Shown one piece after another: positions 6,061-53,578 of a DNA stretch of 64,000 nucleotides (position 1 is the stretch's first letter; each line of letters starts with the position of its first letter). The DNA lies in the NCBI GenBank assembly GCA_937625935.1, contig CALMHQ010000001.1:39802-103801 (forward strand), in the 5' to 3' direction. The DNA comes from Tetramitus jugosus (lineage: Eukaryota > Protista > Heterolobosea). The notes beneath the pieces are model-generated. The model was not told the origin of the DNA and ran no database searches. It saw nothing but the letters and a program-made list of their open reading frames with translations. Made by a program: the position numbers and the translations under genes.

Positions 6061-6106
<46 letters not shown>

Positions 6107-9832: not shown

Positions 9833-9882
<50 letters not shown>

Positions 9883-10495: not shown

Positions 10496-10540
<45 letters not shown>

Positions 10541-10575
10541 GAATTCTCAAAGTGTTGGATTGTTCACCCACTAAC

Positions 10576-10630
<55 letters not shown>

Positions 10631-11095: not shown

Positions 11096-11317
11096 AGGAG
11101 GATAAGGTGATCCTTTGATCACGTTTTCGTGAAACAGAGGAAGGCCCGTAAAGGGAGAGAGGGGGATCCCAAGACCCGAAGAGGGAGAGGGAGGCCCAAG
11201 CCCAGAATGGATGGGGCAATCTAACTCTGACATGAGGCCCAAGGCCTTTCTGGCTCATCTTCTGCTTTCCTTGTCGCCTTGTTGGTTTGGATAGAAAGTG
11301 TTCCACTTGGTTGGGCC

Positions 11318-13827: not shown

Positions 13828-13904
13828 CTCTCTTGTCATCGCCCCAAGAGTTTCGACGACAAATGTTCGGTTGTTGGGTGGGAAATCTCATGCCCTAGCT
13901 GTCT

Positions 13905-14372
13905 AAACAGTTTCCCTGTAAAACTAAGGTTATTAACTACCTATATTGTATGTATATACTTTCAATAGAATTCGGTATCAATGCCTCTAATAAAACTCCG
14001 AACTCCGACACTTCTAAAGGAAGCATAACGGAGAAAAAGTGAGAGAATACATAACAATTAATATACAGATAAAATCATGAGCGCGAGCAGAATGATCAAT
14101 CAACACTATGAGGGACAGGGTCGCCCATGTTTAAAGCAGTCTGCCGGGTTCAATCCTGTTCCTCATAGTTGTGTATCATCAATCTGCTCATGCTCGTGAT
14201 TTGTCTATTATGTTACTTGTAATTTCTATTCTCACTTTTTCTTTATTGTGCTTTATCTTTGTTTGTCGGAGTTCGGAGTATTAATAGGGGCATGGTACAA
14301 ACTTTTCATTGGAAATACATACATACAATATACATATTTGATAGCTGTAATTTTTCAGGGAAACTGTTTTGT
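13905..14372. repeat. Imperfect ~470-bp inverted repeat built from two copies of the dispersed 130-bp module (mirrors at ~16330-16797, 58729-59196, 61156-61623)
   Basis: AAACAGTTTCCCTG..CTCCGAACTCCGACA..ACTATGAGGGACAGG / CCTGTTCCTCATAGT..TGTCGGAGTTCGGAG..CAGGGAAACTGTTT. Confidence 0.85.
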
Positions 14373-15243
14373 CACTATATTTATAGCGCGCCCTCTGTCA
14401 TCGCCACCCCCGACCGACAACCATCGCACTCAAAATACTGGGCTTTGAATCTTTCATCGGCTCTCGCTCTGGATAGCTATCACAGTTGTGATGTTTGTGC
14501 TCAAGTGAATTGGTCGTACGAAACACTTTGTGCCACAATGGCTCTCAATTGGGTTGGGATTGGTTGGGTCACACTTTGGCTCTTATTGTTTCACATGAGC
14601 AATCTGCTCGAACACAAATGTCACAACTAAAATATATGCATGGAGCGAGAGCGAATTAATAATATACAACTATGAGGGCCATCGTTGAATTCATCAGAGC
14701 ACGCTGGACACAACAATCCTGTCCCTCACAGTTGAATTTGATTACTCCACTATCGAACATGATTTCTTCTCTAGATCTTATACGACTTCCATGTTTACTT
14801 TTTCTTCATTATGCTTCCTTTAGAAGTGTCGGAGTTCGGAGTATTAATAGGGGCATAGTCAAAGTTCTCCATTGAAACTACATACATACAATATACATAT
14901 TTGATAGCTTTAGTTTTTCAGGGAAACTGTTTTATTACTATATTTGTGGCACGTTTCTGTTGCCGACCACCACCCAACCCTCCATCGCAACTTTTGTGCG
15001 CGAAATATTGAGTTTCAAAGTTTCAATCGGCTCTCGCTCTGTATATCTATTGCTGTTATAATGTTTGTGCTCGAGCAGATCCCATATATGAAACACTTTA
15101 TGTCACAATGTGGCTCACCCAATCCTACTCCAGTCGAGAGCCATTGTGACATAAAGTGTTTCATATATTCAATTCACTTGAGCACGAACCTCACAACTGT
15201 GATAGCTATGTAGAGCGAGAGCCGATTGATAATTCAAAACTCA

Positions 15244-15458
15244 TTATAGTGAGACGACTTTTAACTACATCACTCTCCACCTCTCGACTAACAACTTTTG
15301 CACTCGAAATATTGAGTTTCATAGTTTCAATTGACTTGCGCTCTGCATAGCTATAGTGATTATCATGTGTAAGCACGAGCCAATTGAAAACGTATTTTGC
15401 AACATTTCGAGATGGTTGTGTCTCTCCCCCCAACCAACAACTTTTGCATCCAATATAT
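15244..15458 (+). other. Tail-to-tail junction spacer (215 bp), orientation A, with one 146-bp unit
   Basis: Flanked by inverted arms ending ...GATAATTCAAAACTCA / TGAGTTTTGAATTATC... Confidence 0.93.
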
Positions 15459-16874
15459 TGAGTTTTGAATTATCAATCGGCTCTCGCTCTACATAGCTAT
15501 CACAGTTGTGAGGTTCGTGCTCAAGTGAATTGAATATATGAAACACTTTATGTCACAATGGCTCTCGACTGGAGTAGGATTGGGTGAGCCACATTGTGAC
15601 ATAAAGTGTTTCATATATGGGATCTGCTCGAGCACAAACATTATAACAGCAATAGATATACAGAGCGAGAGCCGATTGAAACTTTGAAACTCAATATTTC
15701 GCGCACAAAAGTTGCGATGGAGGGTTGGGTGGTGGTCGGCAACAGAAACGTGCCACAAATATAGTAATAAAACAGTTTCCCTGAAAAACTAAAGCTATCA
15801 AATATGTATATTGTATGTATGTAGTTTCAATGGAGAACTTTGACTATGCCCCTATTAATACTCCGAACTCCGACACTTCTAAAGGAAGCATAATGAAGAA
15901 AAAGTAAACATGGAAGTCGTATAAGATCTAGAGAAGAAATCATGTTCGATAGTGGAGTAATCAAATTCAACTGTGAGGGACAGGATTGTTGTGTCCAGCG
16001 TGCTCTGATGAATTCAACGATGGCCCTCATAGTTGTATATTATTAATTCGCTCTCGCTCCATGCATATATTTTAGTTGTGACATTTGTGTTCGAGCAGAT
16101 TGCTCATGTGAAACAATAAGAGCCAAAGTGTGACCCAACCAATCCCAACCCAATTGAGAGCCATTGTGGCACAAAGTGTTTCGTACGACCAATTCACTTG
16201 AGCACAAACATCACAACTGTGATAGCTATCCAGAGCGAGAGCCGATGAAAGATTCAAAGCCCAGTATTTTGAGTGCGATGGTTGTCGGTCGGGGGTGGCG
16301 ATGACAGAGGGCGCGCTATAAATATAGTGACAAAACAGTTTCCCTGAAAAATTACAGCTATCAAATATGTATATTGTATGTATGTATTTCCAATGAAAAG
16401 TTTGTACCATGCCCCTATTAATACTCCGAACTCCGACAAACAAAGATAAAGCACAATAAAGAAAAAGTGAGAATAGAAATTACAAGTAACATAATAGACA
16501 AATCACGAGCATGAGCAGATTGATGATACACAACTATGAGGAACAGGATTGAACCCGGCAGACTGCTTTAAACATGGGCGACCCTGTCCCTCATAGTGTT
16601 GATTGATCATTCTGCTCGCGCTCATGATTTTATCTGTATATTAATTGTTATGTATTCTCTCACTTTTTCTCCGTTATGCTTCCTTTAGAAGTGTCGGAGT
16701 TCGGAGTTTTATTAGAGGCATTGATACCGAATTCTATTGAAAGTATATACATACAATATAGGTAGTTAATAACCTTAGTTTTACAGGGAAACTGTTTAGA
16801 CAGCTAGGGCATGAGATTTCCCACCCAACAACCGAACATTTGTCGTCGAAACTCTTGGGGCGATGACAAGAGAG

Positions 16875-19800
16875 AGCATATGTGCGCCAATCTAATCAAA
16901 CTAACAACATACAACATTATTAAATAAACAAGCATCGCAAGCAGTTCGGCTCTACGACACAAAATGGTACACTGTCTGCCTTGGAGGTGTGCCCAAGACC
17001 AACATCAATTGTGGCACAAAAGTCATACCTGCGCCAATCTGATCCAATGCATAATATCAACACTATTGAATAAAGACACAACACAAGCAGCTTGGCGCTA
17101 CGGCACTCCTACTCTAGTCTCGCGCCTTTGTAGGTCTGCCTAAAAGCAACATGACTTGTGGCACAAAAGCCATGCCTGAACCAATCTAATCAAACGCACA
17201 ACATACAACACTATTGAATAAACAAGCAGCGCAAGCAGGACAGCTCTATGACACTTGCTCAGAAATTGCTCTGATCACTAGCGATAAGTGTACCAAGGTG
17301 ATGAAGCATTGTCCATCTGACTTCGACTGAGGCTTACTTAATGGCTTGTCTAAGAACAAGGGCAAGAGGAAGCATACACAGGCCAACTAAATGAAACGCA
17401 CAACATACAACTCTATTAGATAAACAAGCAGCGCAAGCAGAAAAGATAAAAGACACTGGTAACTTTAGGGCCGCGACTGGCGCAAAGTCAGACCACTGGA
17501 GCATATGTGCGCCAATCTAATCAAACTAACAACATACAACATTATTAAATAAACAAGCATCGCAAGCAGTTCGGCTCTACGACACAAAATGGTACACTGT
17601 CTGCCTTGGAGGTGTGCCCAAGACCAACATCAATTGTGGCACAAAAGTCATACCTGCGCCAATCTGATCCAATGCATAATATCAACACTATTGAATAAAG
17701 ACACAACACAAGCAGCTTGGCGCTACGGCACTCCTACTCTAGTCTCGCGCCTTTGTAGGTCTGCCTAAAAGCAACATGACTTGTGGCACAAAAGCCATGC
17801 CTGAACCAATCTAATCAAACGCACAACATACAACACTATTGAATAAACAAGCAGCGCAAGCAGGACAGCTCTATGACACTTGCTCAGAAATTGCTCTGAT
17901 CACTAGCGATAAGTGTACCAAGGTGATGAAGCATTGTCCATCTGACTTCGACTGAGGCTTACTTAATGGCTTGTCTAAGAACAAGGGCAAGAGGAAGCAT
18001 ACACAGGCCAACTAAATGAAACGCACAACATACAACTCTATTAGATAAACAAGCAGCGCAAGCAGAAAAGATAAAAGACACTGGTAACTTTAGGGCCGCG
18101 ACTGGCGCAAAGTCAGACCACTGGAGCATATGTGCGCCAATCTAATCAAACTAACAACATACAACATTATTAAATAAACAAGCATCGCAAGCAGTTCGGC
18201 TCTACGACACAAAATGGTACACTGTCTGCCTTGGAGGTGTGCCCAAGACCAACATCAATTGTGGCACAAAAGTCATACCTGCGCCAATCTGATCCAATGC
18301 ATAATATCAACACTATTGAATAAAGACACAACACAAGCAGCTTGGCGCTACGGCACTCCTACTCTAGTCTCGCGCCTTTGTAGGTCTGCCTAAAAGCAAC
18401 ATGACTTGTGGCACAAAAGCCATGCCTGAACCAATCTAATCAAACGCACAACATACAACACTATTGAATAAACAAGCAGCGCAAGCAGGACAGCTCTATG
18501 ACACTTGCTCAGAAATTGCTCTGATCACTAGCGATAAGTGTACCAAGGTGATGAAGCATTGTCCATCTGACTTCGACTGAGGCTTACTTAATGGCTTGTC
18601 TAAGAACAAGGGCAAGAGGAAGCATACACAGGCCAACTAAATGAAACGCACAACATACAACTCTATTAGATAAACAAGCAGCGCAAGCAGAAAAGATAAA
18701 AGACACTGGTAACTTTAGGGCCGCGACTGGCGCAAAGTCAGACCACTGGAGCATATGTGCGCCAATCTAATCAAACTAACAACATACAACATTATTAAAT
18801 AAACAAGCATCGCAAGCAGTTCGGCTCTACGACACAAAATGGTACACTGTCTGCCTTGGAGGTGTGCCCAAGACCAACATCAATTGTGGCACAAAAGTCA
18901 TACCTGCGCCAATCTGATCCAATGCATAATATCAACACTATTGAATAAAGACACAACACAAGCAGCTTGGCGCTACGGCACTCCTACTCTAGTCTCGCGC
19001 CTTTGTAGGTCTGCCTAAAAGCAACATGACTTGTGGCACAAAAGCCATGCCTGAACCAATCTAATCAAACGCACAACATACAACACTATTGAATAAACAA
19101 GCAGCGCAAGCAGGACAGCTCTATGACACTTGCTCAGAAATTGCTCTGATCACTAGCGATAAGTGTACCAAGGTGATGAAGCATTGTCCATCTGACTTCG
19201 ACTGAGGCTTACTTAATGGCTTGTCTAAGAACAAGGGCAAGAGGAAGCATACACAGGCCAACTAAATGAAACGCACAACATACAACTCTATTAGATAAAC
19301 AAGCAGCGCAAGCAGAAAAGATAAAAGACACTGGTAACTTTAGGGCCGCGACTGGCGCAAAGTCAGACCACTGGAGCATATGTGCGCCAATCTAATCAAA
19401 CTAACAACATACAACATTATTAAATAAACAAGCATCGCAAGCAGTTCGGCTCTACGACACAAAATGGTACACTGTCTGCCTTGGAGGTGTGCCCAAGACC
19501 AACATCAATTGTGGCACAAAAGTCATACCTGCGCCAATCTGATCCAATGCATAATATCAACACTATTGAATAAAGACACAACACAAGCAGCTTGGCGCTA
19601 CGGCACTCCTACTCTAGTCTCGCGCCTTTGTAGGTCTGCCTAAAAGCAACATGACTTGTGGCACAAAAGCCATGCCTGAACCAATCTAATCAAACGCACA
19701 ACATACAACACTATTGAATAAACAAGCAGCGCAAGCAGGACAGCTCTATGACACTTGCTCAGAAATTGCTCTGATCACTAGCGATAAGTGTACCAAGGTG

Positions 19801-21206
19801 ATGAAGCATTGTCCATCTGACTTCGACTGAGGCTTACTTAATGGCTTGTCTAAGAACAAGGGCAAGAGGAAGCATACACAGGCCAACTAAATGAAACGCA
19901 CAACATACAACTCTATTAGATAAACAAGCAGCGCAAGCAGAAAAGATAAAAGACACTGGTAACTTTAGGGCCGCGACTGGCGCAAAGTCAGACCACTGGA
20001 GCATATGTGCGCCAATCTAATCAAACTAACAACATACAACATTATTAAATAAACAAGCATCGCAAGCAGTTCGGCTCTACGACACAAAATGGTACACTGT
20101 CTGCCTTGGAGGTGTGCCCAAGACCAACATCAATTGTGGCACAAAAGTCATACCTGCGCCAATCTGATCCAATGCATAATATCAACACTATTGAATAAAG
20201 ACACAACACAAGCAGCTTGGCGCTACGGCACTCCTACTCTAGTCTCGCGCCTTTGTAGGTCTGCCTAAAAGCAACATGACTTGTGGCACAAAAGCCATGC
20301 CTGAACCAATCTAATCAAACGCACAACATACAACACTATTGAATAAACAAGCAGCGCAAGCAGGACAGCTCTATGACACTTGCTCAGAAATTGCTCTGAT
20401 CACTAGCGATAAGTGTACCAAGGTGATGAAGCATTGTCCATCTGACTTCGACTGAGGCTTACTTAATGGCTTGTCTAAGAACAAGGGCAAGAGGAAGCAT
20501 ACACAGGCCAACTAAATGAAACGCACAACATACAACTCTATTAGATAAACAAGCAGCGCAAGCAGAAAAGATAAAAGACACTGGTAACTTTAGGGCCGCG
20601 ACTGGCGCAAAGTCAGACCACTGGAGCATATGTGCGCCAATCTAATCAAACTAACAACATACAACATTATTAAATAAACAAGCATCGCAAGCAGTTCGGC
20701 TCTACGACACAAAATGGTACACTGTCTGCCTTGGAGGTGTGCCCAAGACCAACATCAATTGTGGCACAAAAGTCATACCTGCGCCAATCTGATCCAATGC
20801 ATAATATCAACACTATTGAATAAAGACACAACACAAGCAGCTTGGCGCTACGGCACTCCTACTCTAGTCTCGCGCCTTTGTAGGTCTGCCTAAAAGCAAC
20901 ATGACTTGTGGCACAAAAGCCATGCCTGAACCAATCTAATCAAACGCACAACATACAACACTATTGAATAAACAAGCAGCGCAAGCAGGACAGCTCTATG
21001 ACACTTGCTCAGAAATTGCTCTGATCACTAGCGATAAGTGTACCAAGGTGATGAAGCATTGTCCATCTGACTTCGACTGAGGCTTACTTAATGGCTTGTC
21101 TAAGAACAAGGGCAAGAGGAAGCATACACAGGCCAACTAAATGAAACGCACAACATACAACTCTATTAGATAAACAAGCAGCGCAAGCAGAAAAGATAAA
21201 AGACAC
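16875..21206 (-). repeat. 625-bp tandem array, ~6.9 copies
   Basis: Reverse complement of the same unit, with three more copies than the first array. Confidence 0.97.
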
Positions 21207-21481
21207 AATTTGAAAAAAAATAATAATAAGAAAAATTTATATAAACTTTTAAAAATAATGGCCCAACCAAGTGGAACACTTTCTATCCAAACCAACAAGG
21301 CGACAAGGAAAGCAGAAGATGAGCCAGAAAGGCCTTGGGCCTCATGTCAGAGTTAGATTGCCCCATCCATTCTGGGCTTGGGCCTCCCTCTCCCTCTTCG
21401 GGTCTTGGGATCCCCCTCTCTCCCTTTACGGGCCTTCCTCTGTTTCACGAAAACGTGATCAAAGGATCACCTTATCCTCCT

Positions 21482-21946
21482 TGGCAAGTCGTGCTCGGCT
21501 CAGTCATTCGGCGATTGAATCACCTTATGATCGTACACCTGCACTTTGCCCAAATACCGCAAGATTGCGATCTTCTTCCCTGGTGGTCTTCCAGAAGAGT
21601 AACTGCTACCACTTGTTTGCATTCGAACTGGCTTCTGACCACAACCCTCGAACGAAGTAAGCACACTCATAGGAATGCACGTACCCCACCCGGTTAGGAA
21701 GTGGTTAAAATTGGCCACAGTGATTAAGCTAGGCTTTGACTTGTATAAATAAAGTCCAACACCAATAATCCAGCGATCCGGAATGACTTCCGCCTTAGAG
21801 GCGTTCAGGCGTTGGTCAAGATGCGTAGACACTCTTCACGATCGTTGCCGATAAAAGGTGAGCCAGAGGCATCATAAGGTGGTTCCTCTCGTACTAAAAC
21901 CTATTACCGCCACGCTGGACCAGACGCTTTCGCGTCAAAAATAAGT

Positions 21947-22001
<55 letters not shown>

Positions 22002-22036
22002 GTTAGTGGGTGAACAATCCAACACTTTGAGAATTC

Positions 22037-22081
<45 letters not shown>

Positions 22082-22694
22082 AACGTCGCTATGAACGCTT
22101 GGCTGCCACAAGCCAGTTATCCCTATGGTAATTTTTCTGACACCTCTAGCTTCGAACTTTGAAGCACTACACGTAAACGTGATGTTCGCTAAAGGATCGC
22201 TAGGACACGCTTTCACGGCTAATACTTGTACTGAAAGTATTTGTCAAGCTGGCTATTGACCTTGTTCGCTACGATAGGTTTCTGACCTATCTGTGCCAAC
22301 CTTTGTACACCTGCGTTAGCTTTTAACAGATGTGCCGCCCCAGCCAAACTCCCCACTTGGTTATGTCCCATATCAATCATAAGCTTACGCATGACCGAAG
22401 CCACGCGCTTCTATACTAGAAGAGTCTTCCATGGGTAAACCCATAGAATACTTCGCTCTTTAATATAGTGAGTGAGATACCAGTAAAAAGCAGTGGTATT
22501 TCATTGTTGAGCAAGCTCTCCCACCTATACTACATCTCTTTCGGTATTCCACAAAACCAAACTAGAGTCAAACTCAACAGGGTCTTCTTTCCCCGCTGAC
22601 TAACCCAAGCCCGTTCCCTTGGCTGTAGGTTCGCTAGACCGTAAATAGGGACAGTAAGAATTTCGTTGTTCCATTCATGCACGTCACAAATTAA

Positions 22695-22744
<50 letters not shown>

Positions 22745-25222
22745 AACCCGTGCTTGATCGAATCTCTTCACTTTGACATCCAGAGCACTGGGCAGAAGTC
22801 ACAAACAGCCACAATCCGTTTTGAACTGTTATCTGTTTGCTTTGTTTTAATTAAACAGTCGAATTCTCCTGGGATCTGTCAGTTCTCGAACAATAGTTTA
22901 TTGTACTCCGCCGGTGTGTCACAGGTTCTCCCGTAACACACTGCTTGACGCCGCCCAAGTACCGGATGCACAGTGTAAAGCTTCTTAACTTTCGGCGAAC
23001 CTACTCATCAATCCGCAATTTCTGCACACCACTCACACGGGGTTAACCGTGCGTGATACCCTTCTTGCGCCACCCGAAGCACCCTATCACAAGAGCCAAC
23101 CTTTATTTCAAAAGTACAAATCCATTTTGCCGACTTCCCTTACTTACATTGTTCTAATTGGTCAGAGGCTTTTAACCTTGGAGACCTGTTGCGGATTCTG
23201 GTACGGTTACAGTTAGAAGAGTCAGATGATAACATTCAATTGGCATTCTATTTACGCTTCGGAGAACTGTACAGCCACAATAATAGTGCCTGCCTTTTCA
23301 GCTCTAATATTTCCCAATCTCTGTTCTACACAATTCATGGGAGATAATAAACCTCCAACACCAACCAAGGTTAGTGCCGTGAGGCCAATCGCTGTTAGGG
23401 AGAAAAGCGGACTCTTCCACAGCCACCGAGACGCTACGCCAACTGAACGAGGCTTTGCAGCTTCATGCTGATGCGAACACCAGCACTCTTCTAACCACAG
23501 TTCAGGAATTTTAGCCTGATTCCCTTTCCTGCCCATCATAGCCGCTCGAAAGCTACTAATAGGAGTTACCCAGACAGTTAGGACCGACTAACCCTTGTCT
23601 GATTTCCATTGACAAGGAAACCTTCTCCACTACGACCTTCAAGATTTAAGCTCTTTATCCAACATTGACGTTGGACCACCTGCTAGATAAAGACACAGAG
23701 TCTCTCCAGAATAGTTGCTACTACTACCAAGATCTGCACTAACGGCCGCTCCACTCATTATCACTAAATAAGCTTCTACGCAACCGTCACGCCTTCCTAC
23801 AAGTCATCACATACAAAATAGTGATAACTGCATGAGAGAAGTATCAACGCTTTGGCGTCATCCATTTTCAGGGCTGCTCCATTCGGCAGGTGAGCTGTTA
23901 CGCACTCCTTAGCGGATTCCAGCTTCCATGGCCACCGTCCTGCTGTCAAAATGAACCAACGCCTTTTATGGTTTCGACTAAGCTTAGATTTAGACACATT
24001 TCTCACTTGCTCACGGTTTAACCCACATTGCCTGTTCTGCTTACCATAACACGGCCCACTAAGAATCAATACTATTGACATGGTTCGATTAAGTAACCAA
24101 TACTTTTTGCATATTTAAAGTTTGAGAATAGGTTAAGGCTTTCCAACCCCAAGGCCTCTAATCATTAGCTTTACCTCACAAAGTTATTCCGATTCTAGCT
24201 ATCCTGAGGGAAATTTCGGAAGGAACCAGCTACCTGATGGTTCGATGAGTCTTTCGCTCCAATACTCAAGTGCGACGAGCGATTTGCACGTCAACATCGT
24301 TACAAGATCCTCCACCAGAGGTTACCCTGGCTTCAATCTGTTCAAGTATAGATCACCATCTTTCGGGTCTTAACATAATAACTAGAACGCAATTCCACGA
24401 CCGAAGTCTACTGGATTGGCCTGTACGTCGCCGAAGCTAATACATTTCACATTCATTACGCATACATGATTTCAAATCACCACTGCTCGCTATTATGTCA
24501 AACTCCTTGGTCCGTGTTTCAAGACGGGCCGGATCCAATGTCCTTTACCAACGATTGCAGGGGCCATTGCTTTCGAACTACTGAGAAGCACCCACTGGCC
24601 TTAGCCGTCTACCCTATCTTAGATAAGGTGTCTGACTTCAGCTTCATAGGTGATTTCCAGCAGTCTTCAGACCGAAGAACCTGCTTTTTTACCGTGCCCA
24701 GAAGACATGGCGTTGGTTGAGTAATCCTTGAGTACATCAGGATAAATCCAGATTGTACAAGACTACAGTCCTAGAACTTGTTGGTTCCGCTTTTTGCTCA
24801 GCGATTTCAGACATTTTTCAGCTCCTTACCAGGAATCTTTTCAACTTTCCCTCTCGGTACTTGTTTGCTATCGGTGTCTTGTATTAATATTTAGCCTTGG
24901 AAGAAGTTCATCTCCCGTATTCAGATTCTACTTTCAAAGAATCCTACTCATGAGAAGATCACCGATCGAAAGCTTATAGAAGCTGACGGGGCTATCACCC
25001 TGTCTCGCCCTCCGAAGAGACGTGTAATTCCAAACACAGACTTTACTTCTATTTGCCTCCAGGCGATCAACTCTTACCCTACAACTCCAAACAATTGTTC
25101 GGATTCAGGGATGGGCTTTTCTCTTTTCGCTCGCCGCTACTAGGAGAATCTCTTTTGATTTCTTTTCCTCCACTTACTAATATGCTTAAATTCAGTGGGT
25201 AACCACTCACAAATGAGGTCAG
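21482..25222 (-). rRNA. 28S (LSU) rRNA, copy 2
   Basis: Reverse complement of copy 1 (mirror coordinates sum to 32577). Confidence 0.96.
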
Positions 25223-25349
25223 AAAAATCAGTATGTATGAAAAATCCGAAGATATCTCTGTACCCAATCCTAAGATTGACGATAGCTGAGGGTTCTTAAA
25301 TCCAAATCAATTGGTTGAAAGACCTCCCAAAGCTAATATGAATGAGATA

Positions 25350-25509
25350 CTGACACTCACAAGCAAGTACCCTTGCTACTCGAAAGCAGCAAGAGTTCCG
25401 TATGCGTTCAAAATCTTGATGATTCACGGGAGTTGCAAGTCACATTAACTGTCACGTTTAACCGCGTTCTTCATCGATACAAGACCCTAGTCATCCATCG
25501 CAAAGCATC
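25350..25509 (-). rRNA. 5.8S rRNA, copy 2
   Basis: Reverse complement of 7068-7227. Confidence 0.93.
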
Positions 25510-25751
25510 CATCCTAGTCGCTGAGTTTCACCAAAGTGACGCATCAGAACGGATTGTTTCTGATACTCCTCAAAACACACACTAGTTGTGAAAAGACATC
25601 GTCACATCGAAATGTGATCGACTTCAATGTCTTTTGTTTTACTCTCCTACCAGTCAAGTCTTAACATTGGACGGAGATTCCAATGTTGACCTTCTGACAA
25701 TGTCAGTGGTTGCATGACAATCCGAAGATTGCCTGGTTGATGCAACCGAAT

Positions 25752-26470
25752 AAATGATCCCTCCGCAGGTTCACCTACGAAGACCTTGTTACGACTTCTC
25801 GTTCCTACAAATAGAGAAATTCAGTTGATTTTCTCGCATTGCTTAGAGCAACGCTGGTCCATCAAATTCATACCTCTATTCAGTCGGTACGAGCGACGGG
25901 CGGTGTGTACAAAAGGCAGGGACGAAGCCAATACGACATGATGAATCATGCTTACTAGGAATTCCTCGTTCACGAGGATTTACAAACCTCGATCCCTGTC
26001 ACATTAATCTTTGATAAGATTTCCCAATCCTTTCGGACCAGGGTTGCATCCCGAAAGATGACTCTACGTTACTTGTTGCTATTAATATTGTAGTACGCGT
26101 GCAGCCCAAGATATCTAAGGGCATCACAGATCTGTTATTGCCTTAAACTTCCTCACCCTGAAGCGGGTGCTGTACCTCTAAGAAGCATCACTGCGAACAG
26201 TGACAGTACAGGTTTCCTGAGGAAATATACATTCCCCCAACGAAACGATGGACAACCGAAGAAGTCCCTGTACCTTAATTAGCAAGTTAAGGTCTCGCTC
26301 GTTAACTGAATTAACAAGACGAATCACTCCACGAACTAAGAACGACCATGCACCACCTTCTGTAAAATCAAGAAAGAACCTTAATCTGTCAATCATATTC
26401 ACATCCTAACTTGGTGAGTTTCCCCGCGTTGAGTCGAATTAAGCCGCATACTCCACTCCTGGTGGTGCCT

Positions 26471-26516
<46 letters not shown>

Positions 26517-27868
26517 AGAACCCAAAAACTTAACGGTTTCCCTTGGATTCTGATAGGATCTAAAAGTCTCACTACCAATCTCGTGTTGGTATCGTTTACG
26601 GTTAAGACTACGACGGTATCTAATCATCTTCGATCCCTTAACTTTCGTCCCTGATTGACAGACACGCTCTGGATCACAACTGCTTTCGCATTAGATAGTC
26701 ATATAGCGGTCACTGAATTTCACCTCTCGCGCCATAGTACTTGGATCCTCTATCAGTGTCTCATTGCGAACGCCGGATCTTCCACTTCTCAGGAAATCCC
26801 TTGAAGTTTCCGATCGGCTTCGTGACAATTCCATGCTAAATCATTCAAGCAAATGGGTTACCCCGTACATTGCCTGCTTGGAGCACTCTGATTTGTTTAC
26901 GGTTGTGCCAATTGGCCCTATCAGACCTTACGGACTGATAGGGAACGAGCCATAATCATTGACCTATCCCATGGCGGATGCTAATTGGGCGGACCCTTTC
27001 GCTTCCGTTAGAGACCGAGGACCTGTCCTTATTCACCCAATCAGCCACAATACGTGACCGACTATGATGAACAGAACTGATCAGATCAATAACTATAACC
27101 CTTTGGTTTACTACGGGCGTTTTAACTACAACAGTATTAATATACACTTTTAGAGCTGGAATTACCGCGGGTGCTGGCACCAGACTTGTCCTCTAATTGC
27201 TACTCATGGAGAGGTTTAATCTCCATCCATTTCAAACCACAAAGTGGTACCTTTCCACCATTTGGTGTAAAGTCGCTATGTCTTGTCACTACCTCTCTGA
27301 ATTAGAATTGGGTAATTTACGCGCCTGCTGCCGTCCTTAGATGTGATAGCCGTTTCTCAGGCTCTCTCTCCGGAGTTGGACACCAATCCCCCGTATCCGT
27401 TATAGCCTCGTTTCGCCTTTACCGAAACTACTGAGCTGATAGATTAGAAACATATCTTCCTGGCCACTAGTCAACAAGAAAGCCGTAGGTCTTATTAGGA
27501 CGCTAAGTCATTCACGCTGCATTCGCTTGCAAGCAAGCGAAAATCTAATGGTCGACAACTGTTCAGATCTTCCGACGAATCTTGGATCCTCCCAGCTAAC
27601 AATAGAGCGGACTCACCCTTACTCTAGTGTCTACTGTCTACTTAATTCAACAGTAATCGTAGGCATTATCGCTGCAGTTGACAGTGTTATTCCCATCCCC
27701 GAAGGGTTGTACCAGGTGGCTAAATTCATAACTTGTTTAATGAGCCTTTCACAGATTAACAATGAATAAGGGTTGAGGCGAACCTCTTCCCAAAACTATG
27801 CCGATCTTACACATGCATGGCTTAATCTTTGAGACAAGCATATGACTACTGGCAGGATCAACCAGGTA
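25752..27868 (-). rRNA. 18S (SSU) rRNA, copy 2
   Basis: Reverse complement of 4709-6825 (..GGCAGGATCAACCAGGTA ends at 27868). Confidence 0.98.
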
Positions 27869-30800
27869 ATCATGATTTTCTCTCTAGCCCTATTAAGACT
27901 GCGTGCTAAGCTTGCAGCTTTCTAGTAACTAGATTAAAAATCTATTGGTTCTTGTGAGTCGTAAAACTCACTAGATTTTTCTAAACACCTATAAAAGCAG
28001 TCAAACCGAAGTTACGACTGATAAAACTGTTCGGAACGCGAGTTGTTGGTGCGCTTGTACTGAAGCATGAGCCCCATAAGCACTATTCCTACTACGTCAC
28101 CAGGACGCAATAAGCTTCATATTAAGAATACTAGATTCTATACTACACGCCTCCTTTCTACCTACCTCCTTTCGGCCTACCTTCTTACCTCCTTCTACCT
28201 ACCTCCTTTCTACCTATCTCCTTACCTCCTTCTACCTCCTTTCAGCCTGCCTTCTTTTCGGCCTACCTTCTTACCTCCTTCTCTCGGCCCACCTTCTTCC
28301 TACCTCCTTTCAGCCTACCTCCTTTCAGCCTACCTCCTTTCAGCCTACCTCCTTTCAGCCTACCTCCTTCCTCCTTCTACCTACTTTCTAGATACCTTAC
28401 CTCCCCTCTTACCTACTTTCTAGATACCTTACCTCCCCTCTTACCTTCTTTTTTCTTCTTCTCTTCTCCTTCCTCTTCTCTTCTCCTTCCTCCTACCTTC
28501 ATCTCCCTTCCTCTCCTCCTTCTTCCCTTCCTCCTTCTCTCCTCCTTCTCTCTCTTCTCCTCTCCTCCTTCTTCTTTCTCTCTTCTCCTTCTTCTTTTCT
28601 CTCTTCTCCTTCTTTTTTTTTCTCTTTTTTCTCTTACTCCCACCAAAAAACCGTATTTTGCGTGGGGGGCTGGGAGACGGTCCCAGTCACGGCTATATAT
28701 ATATATGTGCACATCCAGGGTGAAACTGGTTGCTATGACACCCTACATAATCTGGCCAAAAATCAAAAATCGAAAAATCCTGTGTCACTCTATGTTCACA
28801 CATTTAGCTGCATCGGAGTTTCATCTGTACTTTTTTGGAATTTTTCGGAAAAAATCAAAAAATCACTATCTCCAATTGTAAATCGTCTACCGATGAAATA
28901 TATTTCAACATAAAATTTTACGTTTTTGTATCATCACTAGGGGTCGGAAAAACTCCCCTGAGGAGCAATCCTTTTTTTCTCAAAAACGGCATGTCGGATT
29001 AATAATCTATGTCCATAATACCTAGAAAATATTAATTTTCTGTTCTAATTCACCATAAATATCATTTCTCCGATGCTTTTCCATGGACTTTTTTTTTTCG
29101 ACAAGAAATCTGCCAGTCTAATTTGACTGACTCTTGGGCCACAGAGACAATATTATGAAGCTATGAAACAACACGAGAATTAGACCAAAGCAATGCACCG
29201 TTTAGAAAATAGGTGTTTTCGAAACAAATCACACGAATGTTCGTCGACAGACCAACTCACTCCAAATTTCACTCTCTAAATTTCACATTTTTTAGTTTCG
29301 TACAGTCAATTCGCTTGTGCTATTCCTCTCTTCACTATATTGCTTACAACTTCCATCTTTACTTTTTCTCTATTATGCTTCCTTTACATTTGTCGGAGTT
29401 CGGAGTATTAATAGGGGCATAGTCGAAGTTTTCCATTGAAATTGTATGCGTAATATATAAATATTTGATAGCTGTAGTTTTTCAGGGAAACTGTTTTATT
29501 ATTCTTTCAGAGAGTTAATTTCTCCGACATTGAAACGGAGCATTTTAGAGAAAAAGTAAAGATGGAAGTTGTATAAGATATTAAGATCAAATCATCAGCA
29601 CTAGCGGATTAATAATATTCAACTATGATGGTCATATTTAACTCCGACCGACGCCCAGAAAGTCATCCGACTCTGTCCATCACAGTTGAATTTGGTTACT
29701 CCGCTCACGCTAATCATTTGTCTATTATATTGCTTGCTACTCCCAACTCGCTTTCTCTCTACTATGCTTCCTTTAGAAGTGTCGGAGTTCGGAGTATTTA
29801 TAGGAGTATTGTTACTGGTCTCCATTGAAACTTCATACATACAATATACTTATTTGATAGCTGTAGTTTTTCAGGGAAACTGTTTTATTACTATATTTGT
29901 GGCACTTTTTCTGTTGCCGATCACCACCCAACCCTCCATCGCAACTTTTGTGCGCGAAATATTGAGTTTCAAAGTTTCAATCGGCTCTCGCTCTGTATAT
30001 CTATTGCTGTTATAATGTTTGTGCTCGAGCAGATCCCATATATGAAACACTTTATGTCACAATGTGGCTCACCCAATCCTACTCCAGTCGAGAGCCATTG
30101 TGACATAAAGTGTTTCATATATTCAATTCACTTGAGCACGAACCTCACAACTGTGATAGCTATGTAGAGCGAGAGCCGATTGATAATTCAAAACTCATTA
30201 TAGTGAGACGACTTTTAACTACATCACTCTCCACCTCTCGACTAACAACTTTTGCACTCGAAATATTGAGTTTCATAGTTTCAATCGGCTCTCGCTCTAC
30301 ATAGCCATTGCTGTTGTGAGGTTCGTGTTTGAGCAGATGCCATATATGAAACACTTTATGTCACAATGTGGCTCACCCAATCCTACTCCAGTCGAGAGCC
30401 ATTGTGACATAAAGTGTTTCATATATTCAATTCACTTGAGCACGAACCTCACAACTGTGATAGTTATGTAGAGCGAGAGCCGATTGACACTTTGAAACTC
30501 AATATTTCGAGTGCAAAAGTTGGATGGAGGGTGGAATGTGGTCGGCAACAGAAACGTGCCACAAATATAGTAATAAAACAGTTTCCCTGAAAAACTACAG
30601 CTATCAAATAAGTATATTGTATGTATGTAGTTTCAATGGAGAACTTTGACTATGCCCCTATTAATACTCCGAACTCCGACACTTCTAAAGGAAGCATAAT
30701 GAAGAAAAAGTAAACATGGAAGTCGTATAAGATCTAGAGAAGAAATCATGTTCGATAGTGGAGTAATCAAATTCAACTGTGGGAGATAGCTGCAGTCAGA

Positions 30801-33034: not shown

Positions 33035-33723
33035 CTCGGCTTCATGTTGCGGCCTGGGTTCAAGCCCGGACTGCCAATTCCCCATCCCCCAGTTGATGTG
33101 TAACTCCCGATGGCACTCCATTGGTGAGCTCTCAGCGTCATTTCACTCCATTGGTGGGAACGCATAATGGTAACTCCCTCATTATGACCCAATGGCGCTC
33201 TACTCAACTGAGACCAATGGTGACTTCCACCAGTGTCCGATGGAGCTTTACTTACTAGTGAGACTAGTGAGTGTGCTCCATTATATACACAGTCGGCGCT
33301 TGCTCTTCGCTAATCCGTAGCTAGGAGCCACTTTTCCGATGTAATCCACGTTCATTTGGTGCACATCCATTGAGCTAGCTTGGATCGATCGGACATGAAT
33401 ACCTCCATTTGCCGCTAACCCTGCTCTCGGCCTGCGTGTTGCGGCCTGGGTTCAAGCACGGACCGCCAATTATCTATTCCCCAGTTGATGTGTAACTCCC
33501 GATGGCACTCCATTGGTGAGCTCTCAGCGTCATTTCACTCCATTGGTGGGAACGCATAATGGTAACTCCCTCATTATGACCCAATGGCGCTCTACTCAAC
33601 TGAGACCAATGGTGACTTCCACCAGTGTCCGATGGAGCTTTACTTACTAGTGAGACTAGTGAGTGTGCTCCATTATATACACAGTCGGCGCTTGCTCTTC
33701 GCTAATCCGTAGCTAGGAGCCAC
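33035..33723. repeat. ~290-bp direct duplication, offset 392 (33035-33331 / 33426-33723; mirror ~41801-42489)
   Basis: CCCCAGTTGATGTGTAACTCCCGATGG...TAGCTAGGAGCCAC is present twice; the 5' ~50 bp are diverged. Confidence 0.92.
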
Positions 33724-33957
33724 GCACCCTCAGCAGGCAATAACGCCTCCTTTCCGTATTCAAGCTTTCAGATCCAAAGTACCTCGCTGCTGATAATCGC
33801 CAACAACATCTTCTCCACGTCCAGTCAGTTTTCACTGACCTTCTATGGGTCCGAGTTTGTCATTGATGATCAGCAATGGATGCGAGTTAGAGTATGACTG
33901 CATGCTTTCATTTCCAACTTGACGTCTGGGTTTTAACATGTGTCTTATTCTAACTCC

Positions 33958-34279
33958 ACGCAGCTTTTTATCACAAAACAATGAATGATCCCGTTAACTT
34001 TACGCAGCTTTTACCACAAAACAATGATGATCACGTTAACTTTATGCTGCTTTTTATCACAAAACAATGAATGATCCCGTTAACTTTACGCAGCTTTTTA
34101 TCACAACACTTTATCACAATGATTTGATCCCGTTAACTTTATGCTGCTTTTTATCACAAAACAATGATGATCACGTTAACTTTACGCAGCTTTTACCACA
34201 AAACAATGATGATCCCGTTAACTTTATGCTGCTTTTTACCACAAAACAATGAATGATCACGTTAACTTTATGCTGCTTT
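33958..34279 (-). repeat. 42-44-bp tandem repeats, mirror copy
   Basis: Reverse complement of 41245-41566. Confidence 0.93.
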
Positions 34280-34428
34280 TGCACAATGTCCGCCCATATT
34301 TTCACACTACGTCAATTGCATGGCATCCAGGGAGGGTCAACGGTCGATTATGGAAGTGGGATTCTTCACTAAAATCGGATTTAACCGAGAACGCCTGAGC
34401 GCTCTCCCGTCCTGGTTCTATCACCCAC

Positions 34429-34566
34429 CTGTTCGGAACGCGAGTTGTTGGTGCGCTTGTACTGAAGCATGAGCCCCATAAGCACTATTCCTACTACGTC
34501 ACCAGGACGCAATAAGCTTCATATTAAGAATACTAGATTCTATACTACGCGCCTCCTTTCTACCTA
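34429..34566 (-). promoter_or_regulatory. Putative spacer promoter, mirror copy
   Basis: Reverse complement of 40958-41095. Confidence 0.55.
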
Positions 34567-36929
34567 GCTCCTTTCGGCCTACCTTCTTACCTCCTTCTAC
34601 CTCCTTTCGGCCTACTTTCTACCTAGCTCTAGGTACCTTCTAGGCACCTTCTACCTACTTTCGGCCTACTTTCGGCCTACTTTCTACCTAGCTCCTTTCG
34701 GCCTACCTTCTTACCTCCTTCTACCTCCTTTCGGCCTACTTTCTACCTAGCTCTAGGTACCTTCTAGGCACCTTCTACCTACTTTCGGCCTACTTTCGGC
34801 CTACTTTCTACCTAGCTCCTTTCGGCCTACCTTCTTACCTCCTTCTACCTCCTTTACCTAGCTCCTTTCTACCTAGCTCTAGGTACCTTCCAGGTACCTT
34901 CTACCTACTTTTGCACTGGCAAAAATTTTTTGAAAAGGGGATCCCCCCCCTATTTTGGCCAGAAAAGGGCCAAAAAAGACCGGACAAAACCCACACCACA
35001 CAAAAAACCGTATTTTGCGTGGGGGGCTGGGAGACGGTCCCAGTCACGGCTATATATATATATGTGCACATCCAGGGTGAAACTGGTTGCTATGACACCC
35101 TACATAATCTGGCCAAAAATCAAAAATCGAAAAATCCTGTGTCACTCTATGTTCACACATTTAGCTGCATCGGAGTTTCATCTGTACTTTTTTGGAATTT
35201 TTCGGAAAAAATCAAAAAATCACTATCTCCAATTGTAAATCGTCTACCGATGAAATATATTTCAACATAAAATTTTACGTTTTTGTATCATCACTAGGGG
35301 TCGGAAAAACTCCCCTGAGGAGCAATCCTTTTTTTCTCAAAAACGGCATGTCGGATTAATAATCTATGTCCATAATACCTAGAAAATATTAATTTTCTGT
35401 TCTAATTCACCATAAATATCATTTCTCCGATGCTTTTCCATGGACTTTTTTTTTTCGACAAGAAATCTGCCAGTCTAATTTGACTGACTCTTGGGCCACA
35501 GAGACAATATTATGAAGCTATGAAACAACACGAGAATTAGACCAAAGCAATGCACCGTTTAGAAAATAGGTGTTTTCGAAACAAATCACACGAATGTTCG
35601 TCGACAGACCAACTCACTCCAAATTTCACTCTCTAAATTTCACATTTTTTAGTTTCGTACAGTCAATTCGCTTGTGCTATTCCTCTCTTCACTATATTGC
35701 TTACAACTTCCATCTTTACTTTTTCTCTATTATGCTTCCTTTACATTTGTCGGAGTTCGGAGTATTAATAGGGGCATAGTCGAAGTTTTCCATTGAAATT
35801 GTATGCGTAATATATAAATATTTGATAGCTGTAGTTTTTCAGGGAAACTGTTTTATTATTCTTTCAGAGAGTTAATTTCTCCGACATTGAAACGGAGCAT
35901 TTTAGAGAAAAAGTAAAGATGGAAGTTGTATAAGATATTAAGATCAAATCATCAGCACTAGCGGATTAATAATATTCAACTATGATGGTCATATTTAACT
36001 CCGACCGACGCCCAGAAAGTCATCCGACTCTGTCCATCACAGTTGAATTTGGTTACTCCGCTCACGCTAATCATTTGTCTATTATATTGCTTGCTACTCC
36101 CAACTCGCTTTCTCTCTACTATGCTTCCTTTAGAAGTGTCGGAGTTCGGAGTATTTATAGGAGTATTGTTACTGGTCTCCATTGAAACTTCATACATACA
36201 ATATACTTATTTGATAGCTGTAGTTTTTCAGGGAAACTGTTTTATTACTATATTTGTGGCACTTTTTCTGTTGCCGATCACCACCCAACCCTCCATCGCA
36301 ACTTTTGTGCGCGAAATATTGAGTTTCAAAGTTTCAATCGGCTCTCGCTCTGTATATCTATTGCTGTTATAATGTTTGTGCTCGAGCAGATCCCATATAT
36401 GAAACACTTTATGTCACAATGTGGCTCACCCAATCCTACTCCAGTCGAGAGCCATTGTGACATAAAGTGTTTCATATATTCAATTCACTTGAGCACGAAC
36501 CTCACAACTGTGATAGCTATGTAGAGCGAGAGCCGATTGATAATTCAAAACTCATTATAGTGAGACGACTTTTAACTACATCACTCTCCACCTCTCGACT
36601 AACAACTTTTGCACTCGAAATATTGAGTTTCATAGTTTCAATCGGCTCTCGCTCTACATAGCCATTGCTGTTGTGAGGTTCGTGTTTGAGCAGATGCCAT
36701 ATATGAAACACTTTATGTCACAATGTGGCTCACCCAATCCTACTCCAGTCGAGAGCCATTGTGACATAAAGTGTTTCATATATTCAATTCACTTGAGCAC
36801 GAACCTCACAACTGTGATAGCTATGTAGAGCGAGAGCCGATTGATAATTCAAAACTCATTATAGTGAGACGACTTTTAACTACATCACTCTCCACCTCTC
36901 GACTAACAACTTTTGCACTCGAAATATTG

Positions 36930-38970
36930 AGTTTCATAGTTTCAATTGACTTGCGCTCTGCATAGCTATAGTGATTATCATGTGTAAGCACGAGCCAATT
37001 GAAAACGTATTTTGCAACATTTCGAGATGGTTGTGTCTCTCCCCCCAACCAACAACTTTTGCATCCAATATATTGAGTTTTAGATTTTCAATTGACTTGC
37101 GCTCTGCATAGCTATAGTGATTATCATGTGTAAGCACGAGCCAATTGAAAACGTATTTTGCAACATTTCGAGATGGTTGTGTCTCTCCCCCCAACCAACA
37201 ACTTTTGCATCCAATATATTGAGTTTTAGATTTTCAATTGACTTGCGCTCTGCATAGCTATAGTGATTATCATGTGTAAGCACGAGCCAATTGAAAACGT
37301 ATTTTGCAACATTTCGAGATGGTTGTGTCTCTCCCCCCAACCAACAACTTTTGCATCCAATATATTGAGTTTTAGATTTTCAATTGACTTGCGCTCTGCA
37401 TAGCTATAGTGATTATCATGTGTAAGCACGAGCCAATTGAAAACGTATTTTGCAACATTTCGAGATGGTTGTGTCTCTCCCCCCAACCAACAACTTTTGC
37501 ATCCAATATATTGAGTTTTAGATTTTCAATTGACTTGCGCTCTGCATAGCTATAGTGATTATCATGTGTAAGCACGAGCCAATTGAAAACGTATTTTGCA
37601 ACATTTCGAGATGGTTGTGTCTCTCCCCCCAACCAACAACTTTTGCATCCAATATATTGAGTTTTAGATTTTCAATTGACTTGCGCTCTGCATAGCTATA
37701 GTGATTATCATGTGTAAGCACGAGCCAATTGAAAACGTATTTTGCAACATTTCGAGATGGTTGTGTCTCTCCCCCCAACCAACAACTTTTGCATCCAATA
37801 TATTGAGTTTTAGATTTTCAATTGACTTGCGCTCTGCATAGCTATAGTGATTATCATGTGTAAGCACGAGCCAATTGAAAACGTATTTTGCAACATTTCG
37901 AGATGGTTGTGTCTCTCCCCCCAACCAACAACTTTTGCATCCAATATATTGAGTTTTAGATTTTCAATTGACTTGCGCTCTGCATAGCTATAGTGATTAT
38001 CATGTGTAAGCACGAGCCAATTGAAAACGTATTTTGCAACATTTCGAGATGGTTGTGTCTCTCCCCCCAACCAACAACTTTTGCATCCAATATATTGAGT
38101 TTTAGATTTTCAATTGACTTGCGCTCTGCATAGCTATAGTGATTATCATGTGTAAGCACGAGCCAATTGAAAACGTATTTTGCAACATTTCGAGATGGTT
38201 GTGTCTCTCCCCCCAACCAACAACTTTTGCATCCAATATATTGAGTTTTAGATTTTCAATTGACTTGCGCTCTGCATAGCTATAGTGATTATCATGTGTA
38301 AGCACGAGCCAATTGAAAACGTATTTTGCAACATTTCGAGATGGTTGTGTCTCTCCCCCCAACCAACAACTTTTGCATCCAATATATTGAGTTTTAGATT
38401 TTCAATTGACTTGCGCTCTGCATAGCTATAGTGATTATCATGTGTAAGCACGAGCCAATTGAAAACGTATTTTGCAACATTTCGAGATGGTTGTGTCTCT
38501 CCCCCCAACCAACAACTTTTGCATCCAATATATTGAGTTTTAGATTTTCAATTGACTTGCGCTCTGCATAGCTATAGTGATTATCATGTGTAAGCACGAG
38601 CCAATTGAAAACGTATTTTGCAACATTTCGAGATGGTTGTGTCTCTCCCCCCAACCAACAACTTTTGCATCCAATATATTGAGTTTTAGATTTTCAATTG
38701 ACTTGCGCTCTGCATAGCTATAGTGATTATCATGTGTAAGCACGAGCCAATTGAAAACGTATTTTGCAACATTTCGAGATGGTTGTGTCTCTCCCCCCAA
38801 CCAACAACTTTTGCATCCAATATATTGAGTTTTAGATTTTCAATTGACTTGCGCTCTGCATAGCTATAGTGATTATCATGTGTAAGCACGAGCCAATTGA
38901 AAACGTATTTTGCAACATTTCGAGATGGTTGTGTCTCTCCCCCCAACCAACAACTTTTGCATCCAATATA
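36930..38970 (+). repeat. 146-bp tandem array, 14 copies, at the head-to-head symmetry centre
   Basis: CCCCCCAACC recurs every 146 bp from 37041 to 38939. Confidence 0.97.
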
Positions 38971-40612
38971 ATGAGTTTTGAATTATCAATCGGCTCTCGC
39001 TCTACATAGCTATCACAGTTGTGAGGTTCGTGCTCAAGTGAATTGAATATATGAAACACTTTATGTCACAATGGCTCTCGACTGGAGTAGGATTGGGTGA
39101 GCCACATTGTGACATAAAGTGTTTCATATATGGGATCTGCTCGAGCACAAACATTATAACAGCAATAGATATACAGAGCGAGAGCCGATTGAAACTTTGA
39201 AACTCAATATTTCGCGCACAAAAGTTGCGATGGAGGGTTGGGTGGTGATCGGCAACAGAAAAAGTGCCACAAATATAGTAATAAAACAGTTTCCCTGAAA
39301 AACTACAGCTATCAAATAAGTATATTGTATGTATGAAGTTTCAATGGAGACCAGTAACAATACTCCTATAAATACTCCGAACTCCGACACTTCTAAAGGA
39401 AGCATAGTAGAGAGAAAGCGAGTTGGGAGTAGCAAGCAATATAATAGACAAATGATTAGCGTGAGCGGAGTAACCAAATTCAACTGTGATGGACAGAGTC
39501 GGATGACTTTCTGGGCGTCGGTCGGAGTTAAATATGACCATCATAGTTGAATATTATTAATCCGCTAGTGCTGATGATTTGATCTTAATATCTTATACAA
39601 CTTCCATCTTTACTTTTTCTCTAAAATGCTCCGTTTCAATGTCGGAGAAATTAACTCTCTGAAAGAATAATAAAACAGTTTCCCTGAAAAACTACAGCTA
39701 TCAAATATTTATATATTACGCATACAATTTCAATGGAAAACTTCGACTATGCCCCTATTAATACTCCGAACTCCGACAAATGTAAAGGAAGCATAATAGA
39801 GAAAAAGTAAAGATGGAAGTTGTAAGCAATATAGTGAAGAGAGGAATAGCACAAGCGAATTGACTGTACGAAACTAAAAAATGTGAAATTTAGAGAGTGA
39901 AATTTGGAGTGAGTTGGTCTGTCGACGAACATTCGTGTGATTTGTTTCGAAAACACCTATTTTCTAAACGGTGCATTGCTTTGGTCTAATTCTCGTGTTG
40001 TTTCATAGCTTCATAATATTGTCTCTGTGGCCCAAGAGTCAGTCAAATTAGACTGGCAGATTTCTTGTCGAAAAAAAAAAGTCCATGGAAAAGCATCGGA
40101 GAAATGATATTTATGGTGAATTAGAACAGAAAATTAATATTTTCTAGGTATTATGGACATAGATTATTAATCCGACATGCCGTTTTTGAGAAAAAAAGGA
40201 TTGCTCCTCAGGGGAGTTTTTCCGACCCCTAGTGATGATACAAAAACGTAAAATTTTATGTTGAAATATATTTCATCGGTAGACGATTTACAATTGGAGA
40301 TAGTGATTTTTTGATTTTTTCCGAAAAATTCCAAAAAAGTACAGATGAAACTCCGATGCAGCTAAATGTGTGAACATAGAGTGACACAGGATTTTTCGAT
40401 TTTTGATTTTTGGCCAGATTATGTAGGGTGTCATAGCAACCAGTTTCACCCTGGATGTGCACATATATATATATAGCCGTGACTGGGACCGTCTCCCAGC
40501 CCCCCACGCAAAATACGGTTTTTTGTGTGGTGTGGGTTTTGTCCGGTCTTTTTTGGCCCTTTTCTGGCCAAAATAGGGGGGATCCCCTTTTCAAAAAATT
40601 TTTGCCAGTGCA

Positions 40613-49008: not shown

Positions 49009-49054
<46 letters not shown>

Positions 49055-52780: not shown

Positions 52781-52830
<50 letters not shown>

Positions 52831-53443: not shown

Positions 53444-53488
<45 letters not shown>

Positions 53489-53523: not shown

Positions 53524-53578
<55 letters not shown>

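Follow-up and report, generated by a model that had tools for sequence, protein, structure and literature searches.

The linear ribosomal DNA (rDNA) of Tetrahymena, Physarum and Dictyostelium is a giant palindrome with one head-head centre and telomeric ends, and its short non-palindromic centre stems from a small inverted repeat. Outside rDNA, the 2-micron plasmid has its own recombinase and a short FRT core, and the plastid inverted repeat flips by general recombination. Closer to the locus described here are the circular rDNAs of other protists. In Naegleria the rDNA resides solely on high-copy circles of 13-16 kb (the CERE), which carry one rDNA unit each and non-ribosomal sequence with many direct and inverted repeats (PMC7714845, PMC5805870). 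EhR1 of Entamoeba histolytica, as presented in the part of its description used here, is a 24.5-kb circle with two inverted rDNA units, and inverted repeats in general are recombinogenic in that species (PMC10285105). In yeast, ODIRA (origin-dependent inverted-repeat amplification) gives rise to autonomously replicating inverted dimeric plasmids (PMC4689423). Here we analyse 64,000 nucleotides of the heterolobosean Tetramitus jugosus (positions 39,802 to 103,801 of contig CALMHQ010000001.1, assembly GCA_937625935.1; hereafter 'the window'), in which rDNA units alternate in strand and every kind of joint is made with the same ~550-bp hairpin-ended module, here called module E. The explanation that we consider best, with middling confidence, is homology-driven recombination at the long palindromes that these modules form. 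The genome note for T. jugosus, whose assembly was made with hifiasm from 37x HiFi reads, says nothing on how the rDNA is arranged (PMC11106597).

Three complete units of small-subunit (SSU), 5.8S and large-subunit (LSU) rRNA genes were located in the window with Rfam, on alternating strands: 4709-11104 (+), 21473-27868 (-) and 47657-54052 (+). Self-comparison yielded a direct period of 42,947 bp, composed of a unit with four repeats, the tail loop, a unit with seven repeats and the head loop. The repeats in question are 625-bp repeats of the 3' spacer; these excepted, the rDNA units match (A versus B, 100% over 13.8 kb). The 5' spacer holds a further segment, a 6.4-kb 'mini-unit' delimited by a 1.87-kb duplication of the promoter region (28640-30505 and 34996-36862). 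The 625-bp repeats also occur at 54319-58652, and the two arms of one tail centre carry unequal numbers of them, four versus seven. Between 11000 and 48000, a range that covers one full unit and both centres, we found neither telomere-like short repeats nor open reading frames (ORFs) of at least 140 amino acids, the spacer ORFs being short and of low complexity.

The locus shares with the linear rDNAs of Tetrahymena, Physarum and Dictyostelium a giant palindrome with a short non-palindromic centre; unlike these, it has head-head and tail-tail centres in alternation and no telomere-like repeat in the range given above, which places it outside their class. As in an EhR1-type inverted dimer, two inverted rDNA units are separated by two different spacers. 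The form of the window – a unit U, the head loop, and the reverse complement of U – fits a 42.9-kb inverted dimer, and fits isomers of that dimer or longer arrays just as well; we infer an extrachromosomal molecule in the form of an inverted dimer or multimer. As far as the part of the EhR1 description used here goes, the likeness extends to upstream and downstream spacers full of tandem repeats and to the type of host, both being rDNAs of amoeboid protists (PMC10285105). The T. jugosus locus, which belongs to an unrelated lineage, differs from EhR1 in its ~21-kb units with an added mini-unit, in being known from contig sequence, which does not imply a circle, and in carrying one hairpin-ended module at both centres and at a third site, a feature not mentioned for EhR1 in that part of the description (PMC10285105).

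The tail centre, T1, has arms at 11371-15251 and 15451-19331 around a 199-nt non-palindromic loop (self-comparison), and reads fold-back hairpin (FB; 15003-15243), linker (GTGAGACGAC...), one 146-bp unit and inverted FB (15459-15700). The arms of the head centre, H, are 25 kb each (11528-36562 and 38964-64000) and 99.97% identical, differing solely by five homopolymer-length differences; in the 2401-nt loop between them (self-comparison), a linker, a second FB (36616-36862), another linker and 14.4 units of 146 bp follow one another, with the inverted FB coming after. The 146-bp unit corresponds to the 304-bp FB-plus-linker unit minus the inner arms and loop of the hairpin. A preliminary description of this DNA had the same cassette lying in the same orientation at the tail and head centres (in our analysis 15000-15710 and 36300-39230), and the tail loop, all 199 nt of which recur with 100% identity and in the same orientation at 36867-37065, bears this out. 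Its counts of one 146-bp unit at the tail and 14 at the head also hold, with the correction that the head centre contains an extra 304-bp FB-plus-linker unit; sharing of the cassette between the two centres likewise holds, and extends to a third pair per unit, which carries the module as well. The cassettes of T1 and H are direct repeats 21.6 kb apart, and those of H and the second tail centre, T2, are inverted. Both centres consist of native sequence, not adapter, and, with sizes of 1.3 kb and 3.4 kb, each fits within the span of a single HiFi read.

Two interpretations of the centres were discarded. The opposite orientation of the two tail loops had been considered as evidence of a 'flip versus flop'; T2 is plainly the reverse complement of T1, arm asymmetry included, and because the whole window is palindromic about the head centre this orientation is uninformative. 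A linear monomer with natural hairpin ends that HiFi sequencing had read through was rejected as unlikely on account of the 2.4-kb head loop and the four versus seven repeats in the tail arms.

Module E is made up of a flank and an FB, the latter a 240-nt imperfect hairpin with arms of ~105-119 nt and a 31-nt loop, whose single-stranded fold has a computed energy of -67.8 kcal/mol (z = -12.5). An alignment of 12 module copies distinguishes tail-type and head-type flanks, which are identical over the 285 nt adjoining the loop, differ at ~12 sites in the next 125 nt – among them both single-nucleotide polymorphisms (SNPs) that the preliminary description had put forward as flank markers – and lose all homology beyond ~440 nt. 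If the ~10% divergence of the neighbouring stretch held throughout, the chance of meeting 484 identical bases in a row would be ~1e-22; the step from 100% to ~90% identity between tail and head modules fits conversion tracts that would start at the hairpin.

Module E always occurs in convergent pairs, of which there are three kinds per unit. The third, site I (29752-30781), is located within the 5' spacer and is mirrored in the units to either side (see the table). Its left flank is of the head type and its right flank equals the tail-centre flank over alignment columns 210-453; site I is therefore a head-to-tail joint that connects the tail of the mini-unit to the head of the rDNA. One module thus serves tail-tail, head-head and head-tail joints alike. 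Ordinary descent accounts for the mosaic SNPs in the site I flank (alignment columns 380 and 393), which were therefore dropped as evidence of recombination.

Independent contigs, designated with the letter L below, were found by searching protein collections with meaningless ORFs that cross the joints, the parent contigs then being compared with the window. Site I is collinear in three of them (L002, L005 and L007). L004, a 20.2-kb contig from European Nucleotide Archive (ENA) sample ERZ25039568, contains a pair of convergent rDNA units whose 625-bp arrays are unequal, and one central FB, the centre running from flank through one FB into ~100 nt of inverted flank and then truncation. Since this contig comes from another sample and has a tail-to-tail junction of its own design, the junction type is no artefact of the present assembly, and the preliminary description's provision that the inverted junctions might exist solely in the assembly does not apply to it. 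On the truncated right arm of L004 (10436-10941), the ~100 nt of inverted flank give way to degenerate 625-like sequence and ~1.3 kb of 3' spacer is missing on that one side; the copies of the 625-bp repeat on the two arms of this tail centre are also unequal, about 6 versus 4-5. In L002 the convergent flanks of site I enclose just one FB, and both the linker and the 146-bp unit are absent. Because the centres of both L004 and L002 hold a single FB, the conserved core is the flank plus the FB, with the linker and the 146-bp unit as optional expansions. The head-head and tail-tail junctions of the window are interrupted inverted repeats with a retained loop, as ODIRA junctions are, and centres with a single FB are found in L004 and L002. 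The yeast system differs in having short repeats, against a 240-nt hairpin within 440-bp homologous flanks here, and in being an experimental amplification, against a stable natural component of several wild strains.

Most 31-mers of the tail centre are present in 20 runs from 14 studies, which include soil, rhizosphere, rock, freshwater and bioreactor metagenomes, and Logan contigs of three independent runs contain the FB-to-linker joint, tail-specific flank contigs and a cyclic array unitig of 176 nt (146+30). The depth of the array unitig relative to a single-copy 3' spacer contig is 5.5 in run X1, 3.6 in X16 and 9.0 in X4, where the window predicts ~7.7; this suggests, contig depths being a rough measure, that the length of the 146-bp array differs between wild strains. 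The deepest run, X15, showed hundreds of low-level 'joints' with GAT/ATC at the break over window positions 14000-16700. These were rejected as rearrangements, the letters being the Hi-C ligation signature at GATC sites, and X15 is probably a Hi-C library of the source sample and so not independent support. Exact-pattern scans of metagenome, viral and prokaryote contig collections (two patterns in the metagenomes) gave no match. The short contig L001 (ENA ERZ23314332; 1.2 kb, coverage 129) is 99.3% identical to window 35028-36245. Its start is close to one edge of the 1.87-kb duplication, and it stops precisely at 36245, the point from which head-type and tail-type flanks are nearly identical, as expected if its sample has the same repeat architecture. 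Look-ups of window ORFs by exact product gave this contig and otherwise no match; for ORFs with a TTG or GTG start, which were translated literally, a match was not to be expected.

The module copies evolve in concert. Between the tail centre and site I, tail-type flanks agree at 97.4% in the window and at 95% in a second strain (L002, L006), compared with 83-86% between strains; that is, paralogous flanks cluster by strain. Identity between the two head copies, each 1.57 kb of promoter and module E, is 99.87% in the window (38964-40530 versus 45320-46885) and 89.8% in L005 (10-1592 versus 6566-8130), where the H-side, upstream copy resembles the rDNA head of L002 at 96.3%. This pattern points to recent gene conversion in the lineage of the window, or to module swapping or a mosaic. 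The hairpin loop also flips: the 31-nt FB loop is reversed relative to its arms in L002 (8618), L003 (49 and 353) and L004 (10279), as compared with all 13 of the 13 copies in the window (15090, 30044, 36401 and so on). L002 and L006 differ by this flip and are otherwise nearly identical in this region, 20 of their mismatches lying in the FB loop, and the hairpin therefore inverts in nature; the flip is a small-inversion polymorphism at the hairpin loop.

Some independent contigs carry joins of other kinds. L008 and L009, from two Joint Genome Institute (JGI) samples and identical over 975 nt, connect an rDNA tail to an rDNA head, running through promoter, head-type module E, FB-linker-FB, tail flank, full 3' spacer (94% to the window) and 625-bp repeat; the window itself contains no such junction. 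L006 leads from the payload of the mini-unit through tail flank, FB, inverted tail flank and 3' spacer into the 625-bp repeat, joining the tail of the mini-unit to the tail of the rDNA. Judged by their sequences, the L006 join and the L008/L009 join match the two reciprocal products that would be expected of one crossover in the tail flanks of site I and the tail centre; such a crossover could invert the 13-15-kb rDNA module or excise a circle of the size of the Naegleria CERE. We lean towards regarding the L008/L009 join as real. In L003, FB-linker-FB is followed by 146-bp units in inverted orientation, the array having been flipped between two inverted FBs. The rDNA module between the tail centre and site I measures ~13-15 kb, as does the CERE, and L008/L009 (which may be chimeric) show the tail-to-head join of such a circle; unlike the CERE, the window has inverted units, an extra mini-unit and hairpin modules. 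The preliminary description had the cassettes bound one monomer of ~22 kb; they are indeed direct repeats, but a monomer of that size is not supported, since it is the smaller rDNA module that the L008/L009 join bounds. The coordinates of the features are collected in the table.

Table. Positions in the window of module E copies, centres, site I and rDNA features.
Feature	Positions	Strand	Remarks
Module E, tail type, left arm of T1	14700-15251	+	~300-bp flank plus FB 15003-15243
T1 loop	15252-15450	+	53-nt linker plus one 146-bp unit; 100% identical to 36867-37065
Module E, tail type, inverted, right arm of T1	15451-16002	-	99.6% to 14700-15251 as reverse complement
Module E, head type, left arm of head-head centre H	36109-36562	+	
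Extra 304-bp unit at H	36563-36919	+	Linker, FB2 36616-36862, linker; period 304, 2.2 copies
One-way array, 14 units of 146 bp	36920-38963	+	Repeat period analysis
Module E, head type, inverted, right arm of H	38964-39496	-	
Second tail-tail centre, T2	59524-60828	-	Reverse complement of T1; E, 203-nt loop 60073-60275, E'
Site I, left half	29752-30258	+	Head-type module E, then linker; identical to head-centre copy, part of 1.87-kb duplication
Site I, right half	30259-30781	-	Second FB (+ orientation), then tail-type flank (-) into mini-unit
Site I mirror copy, left-hand unit	1796-2904	-	
Site I mirror copy, right-hand unit	44744-45852	-	
SSU-5.8S-LSU, middle rDNA unit	21473-27868	-	Bounded by T1 and site I
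625-bp 3' spacer repeat, seven copies, right of T1	16874-21206	-	Self-comparison
625-bp 3' spacer repeat, four copies, left arm of T1	11371-13828		Self-comparison

In the mechanism that we favour, the rDNA replicon is built of segments – the rDNA module, the 6.4-kb mini-unit and inverted copies of both – each ending in the same module E, such that two converging modules form a long palindrome wherever segments meet; in the middle of this palindrome lies either a lone FB or a brief unidirectional series of 304-bp or 146-bp units derived from the FB. Some copies of module E are direct repeats and others inverted ones, such that ordinary homology-driven processes between them (crossover, gene conversion, template switching or fold-back at the hairpin) could invert or excise segments, keep the modules alike and produce the palindromic arrangement and its isomers, the hairpin probably being the initiating lesion or the point of template switching. 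The origin of the inverted arrangement would fit ODIRA or fold-back replication, in which interrupted inverted repeats lead to hairpin-capped linears and these to inverted dimers (PMC4689423). Recombination of this kind may well be ongoing within a cell line, and it would presumably call for no dedicated enzyme. The earlier proposal that exchange between the cassettes produced the head-head and tail-tail arrangement is supported in part, by the inverted geometry of the head and second tail cassettes, the concerted flanks, and the alternative joins in independent contigs.

Several observations weigh against this mechanism. The tail loop, with one unit, differs greatly from the head loop, which has 14 units and an additional FB, and divergence between the outer flanks amounts to 4-10%; this makes frequent exchange of whole cassettes between head and tail unlikely in this strain. 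The ~21-kb units probably exceed most HiFi reads, such that reads are unlikely to link the tail centre to the head centre, or to bridge the 15-18 kb from the head centre to the 625-bp arrays, and how the centres follow one another along the contig is provisional. None of the independent contigs contains the head-head centre whole, and the Logan contigs span too little to link the loops with type-specific SNPs 285 nt away. Finally, L006, L008 and L009, which come from metagenome assemblies that are probably of short reads, could be assembler chimeras across a 170-nt identical block (alignment columns 210-379); across this block a crossover and a chimera yield the same sequence, and the two are therefore not told apart.

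The likeliest rival is a single ODIRA or fold-back replication error, in which forks would have reversed at pre-existing FBs on either side of an origin-bearing segment and a hairpin-capped 'dog-bone' intermediate would have become a stably inherited inverted dimer, with the centres left as scars. Head and tail centres alike are located at an interrupted inverted repeat, retain a loop that is not palindromic and have arms that extend symmetrically outward, and in relatives the centre is exactly one FB, all of which matches the signature of ODIRA inverted-dimer junctions (PMC4689423); the stable difference between tail and head loops fits a fixed structure as well. A one-off event would on its own leave unexplained the head-tail joint made from the same module, the concerted evolution of flanks within strains, the recent homogenisation of the 1.57-kb head copies and the joins in L006, L008 and L009, and the tail arms are unequal, four versus seven repeats; we regard it as rather unlikely. 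That the alternation is nothing more than a hifiasm walk through a repeat tangle, with inverted junctions absent in the cell, seems very improbable. The 21-kb units do probably exceed most HiFi reads, and any graph with an inverted edge, true or false, would give the form U, H and reverse complement of U; against this stand centres that fit into single HiFi reads and hold native sequence, the tail-tail junction of another sample's contig, with its own design, and loop sequences in runs of 14 studies.

The preliminary description viewed the cassette as a candidate for a dedicated recombination or resolution site, served in the manner of the 2-micron plasmid by a site-specific recombinase or hairpin resolvase encoded elsewhere, with inversion, double-rolling-circle amplification and monomer resolution as its outcomes. 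Our data do not support this, and we consider it unlikely. The direct and inverted geometry of the cassettes is correct for such a system, identity is perfect near the loop, and the hairpin loop flips; yet there is no ORF of at least 140 amino acids between 11000 and 48000, no short core site was identified, and the cassette as then defined is dispensable, the linker and the 146-bp unit being missing from the single-hairpin centres of related strains. Apparent exchange points, too, differ between contigs (in the tail flank in L008, at the far end of the FB in L006; the contigs may be chimeric), as would be expected for homology and not for one fixed site. Large inverted repeats would let intervening segments flip here as they do under FLP/FRT in the 2-micron plasmid and in plastid flip-flop; with neither an own recombinase nor a short core seen, the plastid case is mechanistically the closer one. 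A narrower version, in which module E itself is a dedicated cis-acting isomerisation site that a host enzyme acting in trans, such as a hairpin or cruciform resolvase, extrudes or cuts, strikes us as doubtful. If it were true, the cell would deliberately move its rDNA replicon back and forth among a monomer circle, an inverted dimer and palindromes of higher order, a programmed, 2-micron-like control of nuclear rDNA copy number with the enzyme acting in trans. Selection on a cis function (replication origin, fork barrier, or RNA polymerase I enhancer or terminator) might instead keep the sequences alike with no role in rearrangement. The modules adjoin promoters and the ends of transcription units and are kept across strains, and the duplicated promoter has the 146-bp array upstream of it, an arrangement like that of the spacer enhancer repeats that sit upstream of promoters in other rDNAs. 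Selection would, however, rarely give 484 nt of perfect identity beside 10% divergence, it does not cluster paralogues by strain, and the array and linker are dispensable in relatives. As the whole explanation a cis function is thus improbable; it could coexist with recombination.

Homology-driven recombination at palindromic modules accordingly remains the reading that we prefer. The novelty is that joints of all kinds are made with one hairpin-ended module, that a mini-unit shares this chassis, and that relatives in the wild combine the same parts in other ways. The true long-range structure should not be read off the long alternating rDNA contig of this reference assembly. Gene amplification, the control of replication origins and the formation of palindromes all have classic models in extrachromosomal and palindromic rDNAs. 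If the recombinant joins are real, the rDNA of T. jugosus and its relatives would be a natural case of the inverted-repeat reshuffling proposed for gene amplification in yeast and in cancer cells, and would link the single-unit circle of the Naegleria type to inverted dimers of the Entamoeba type.

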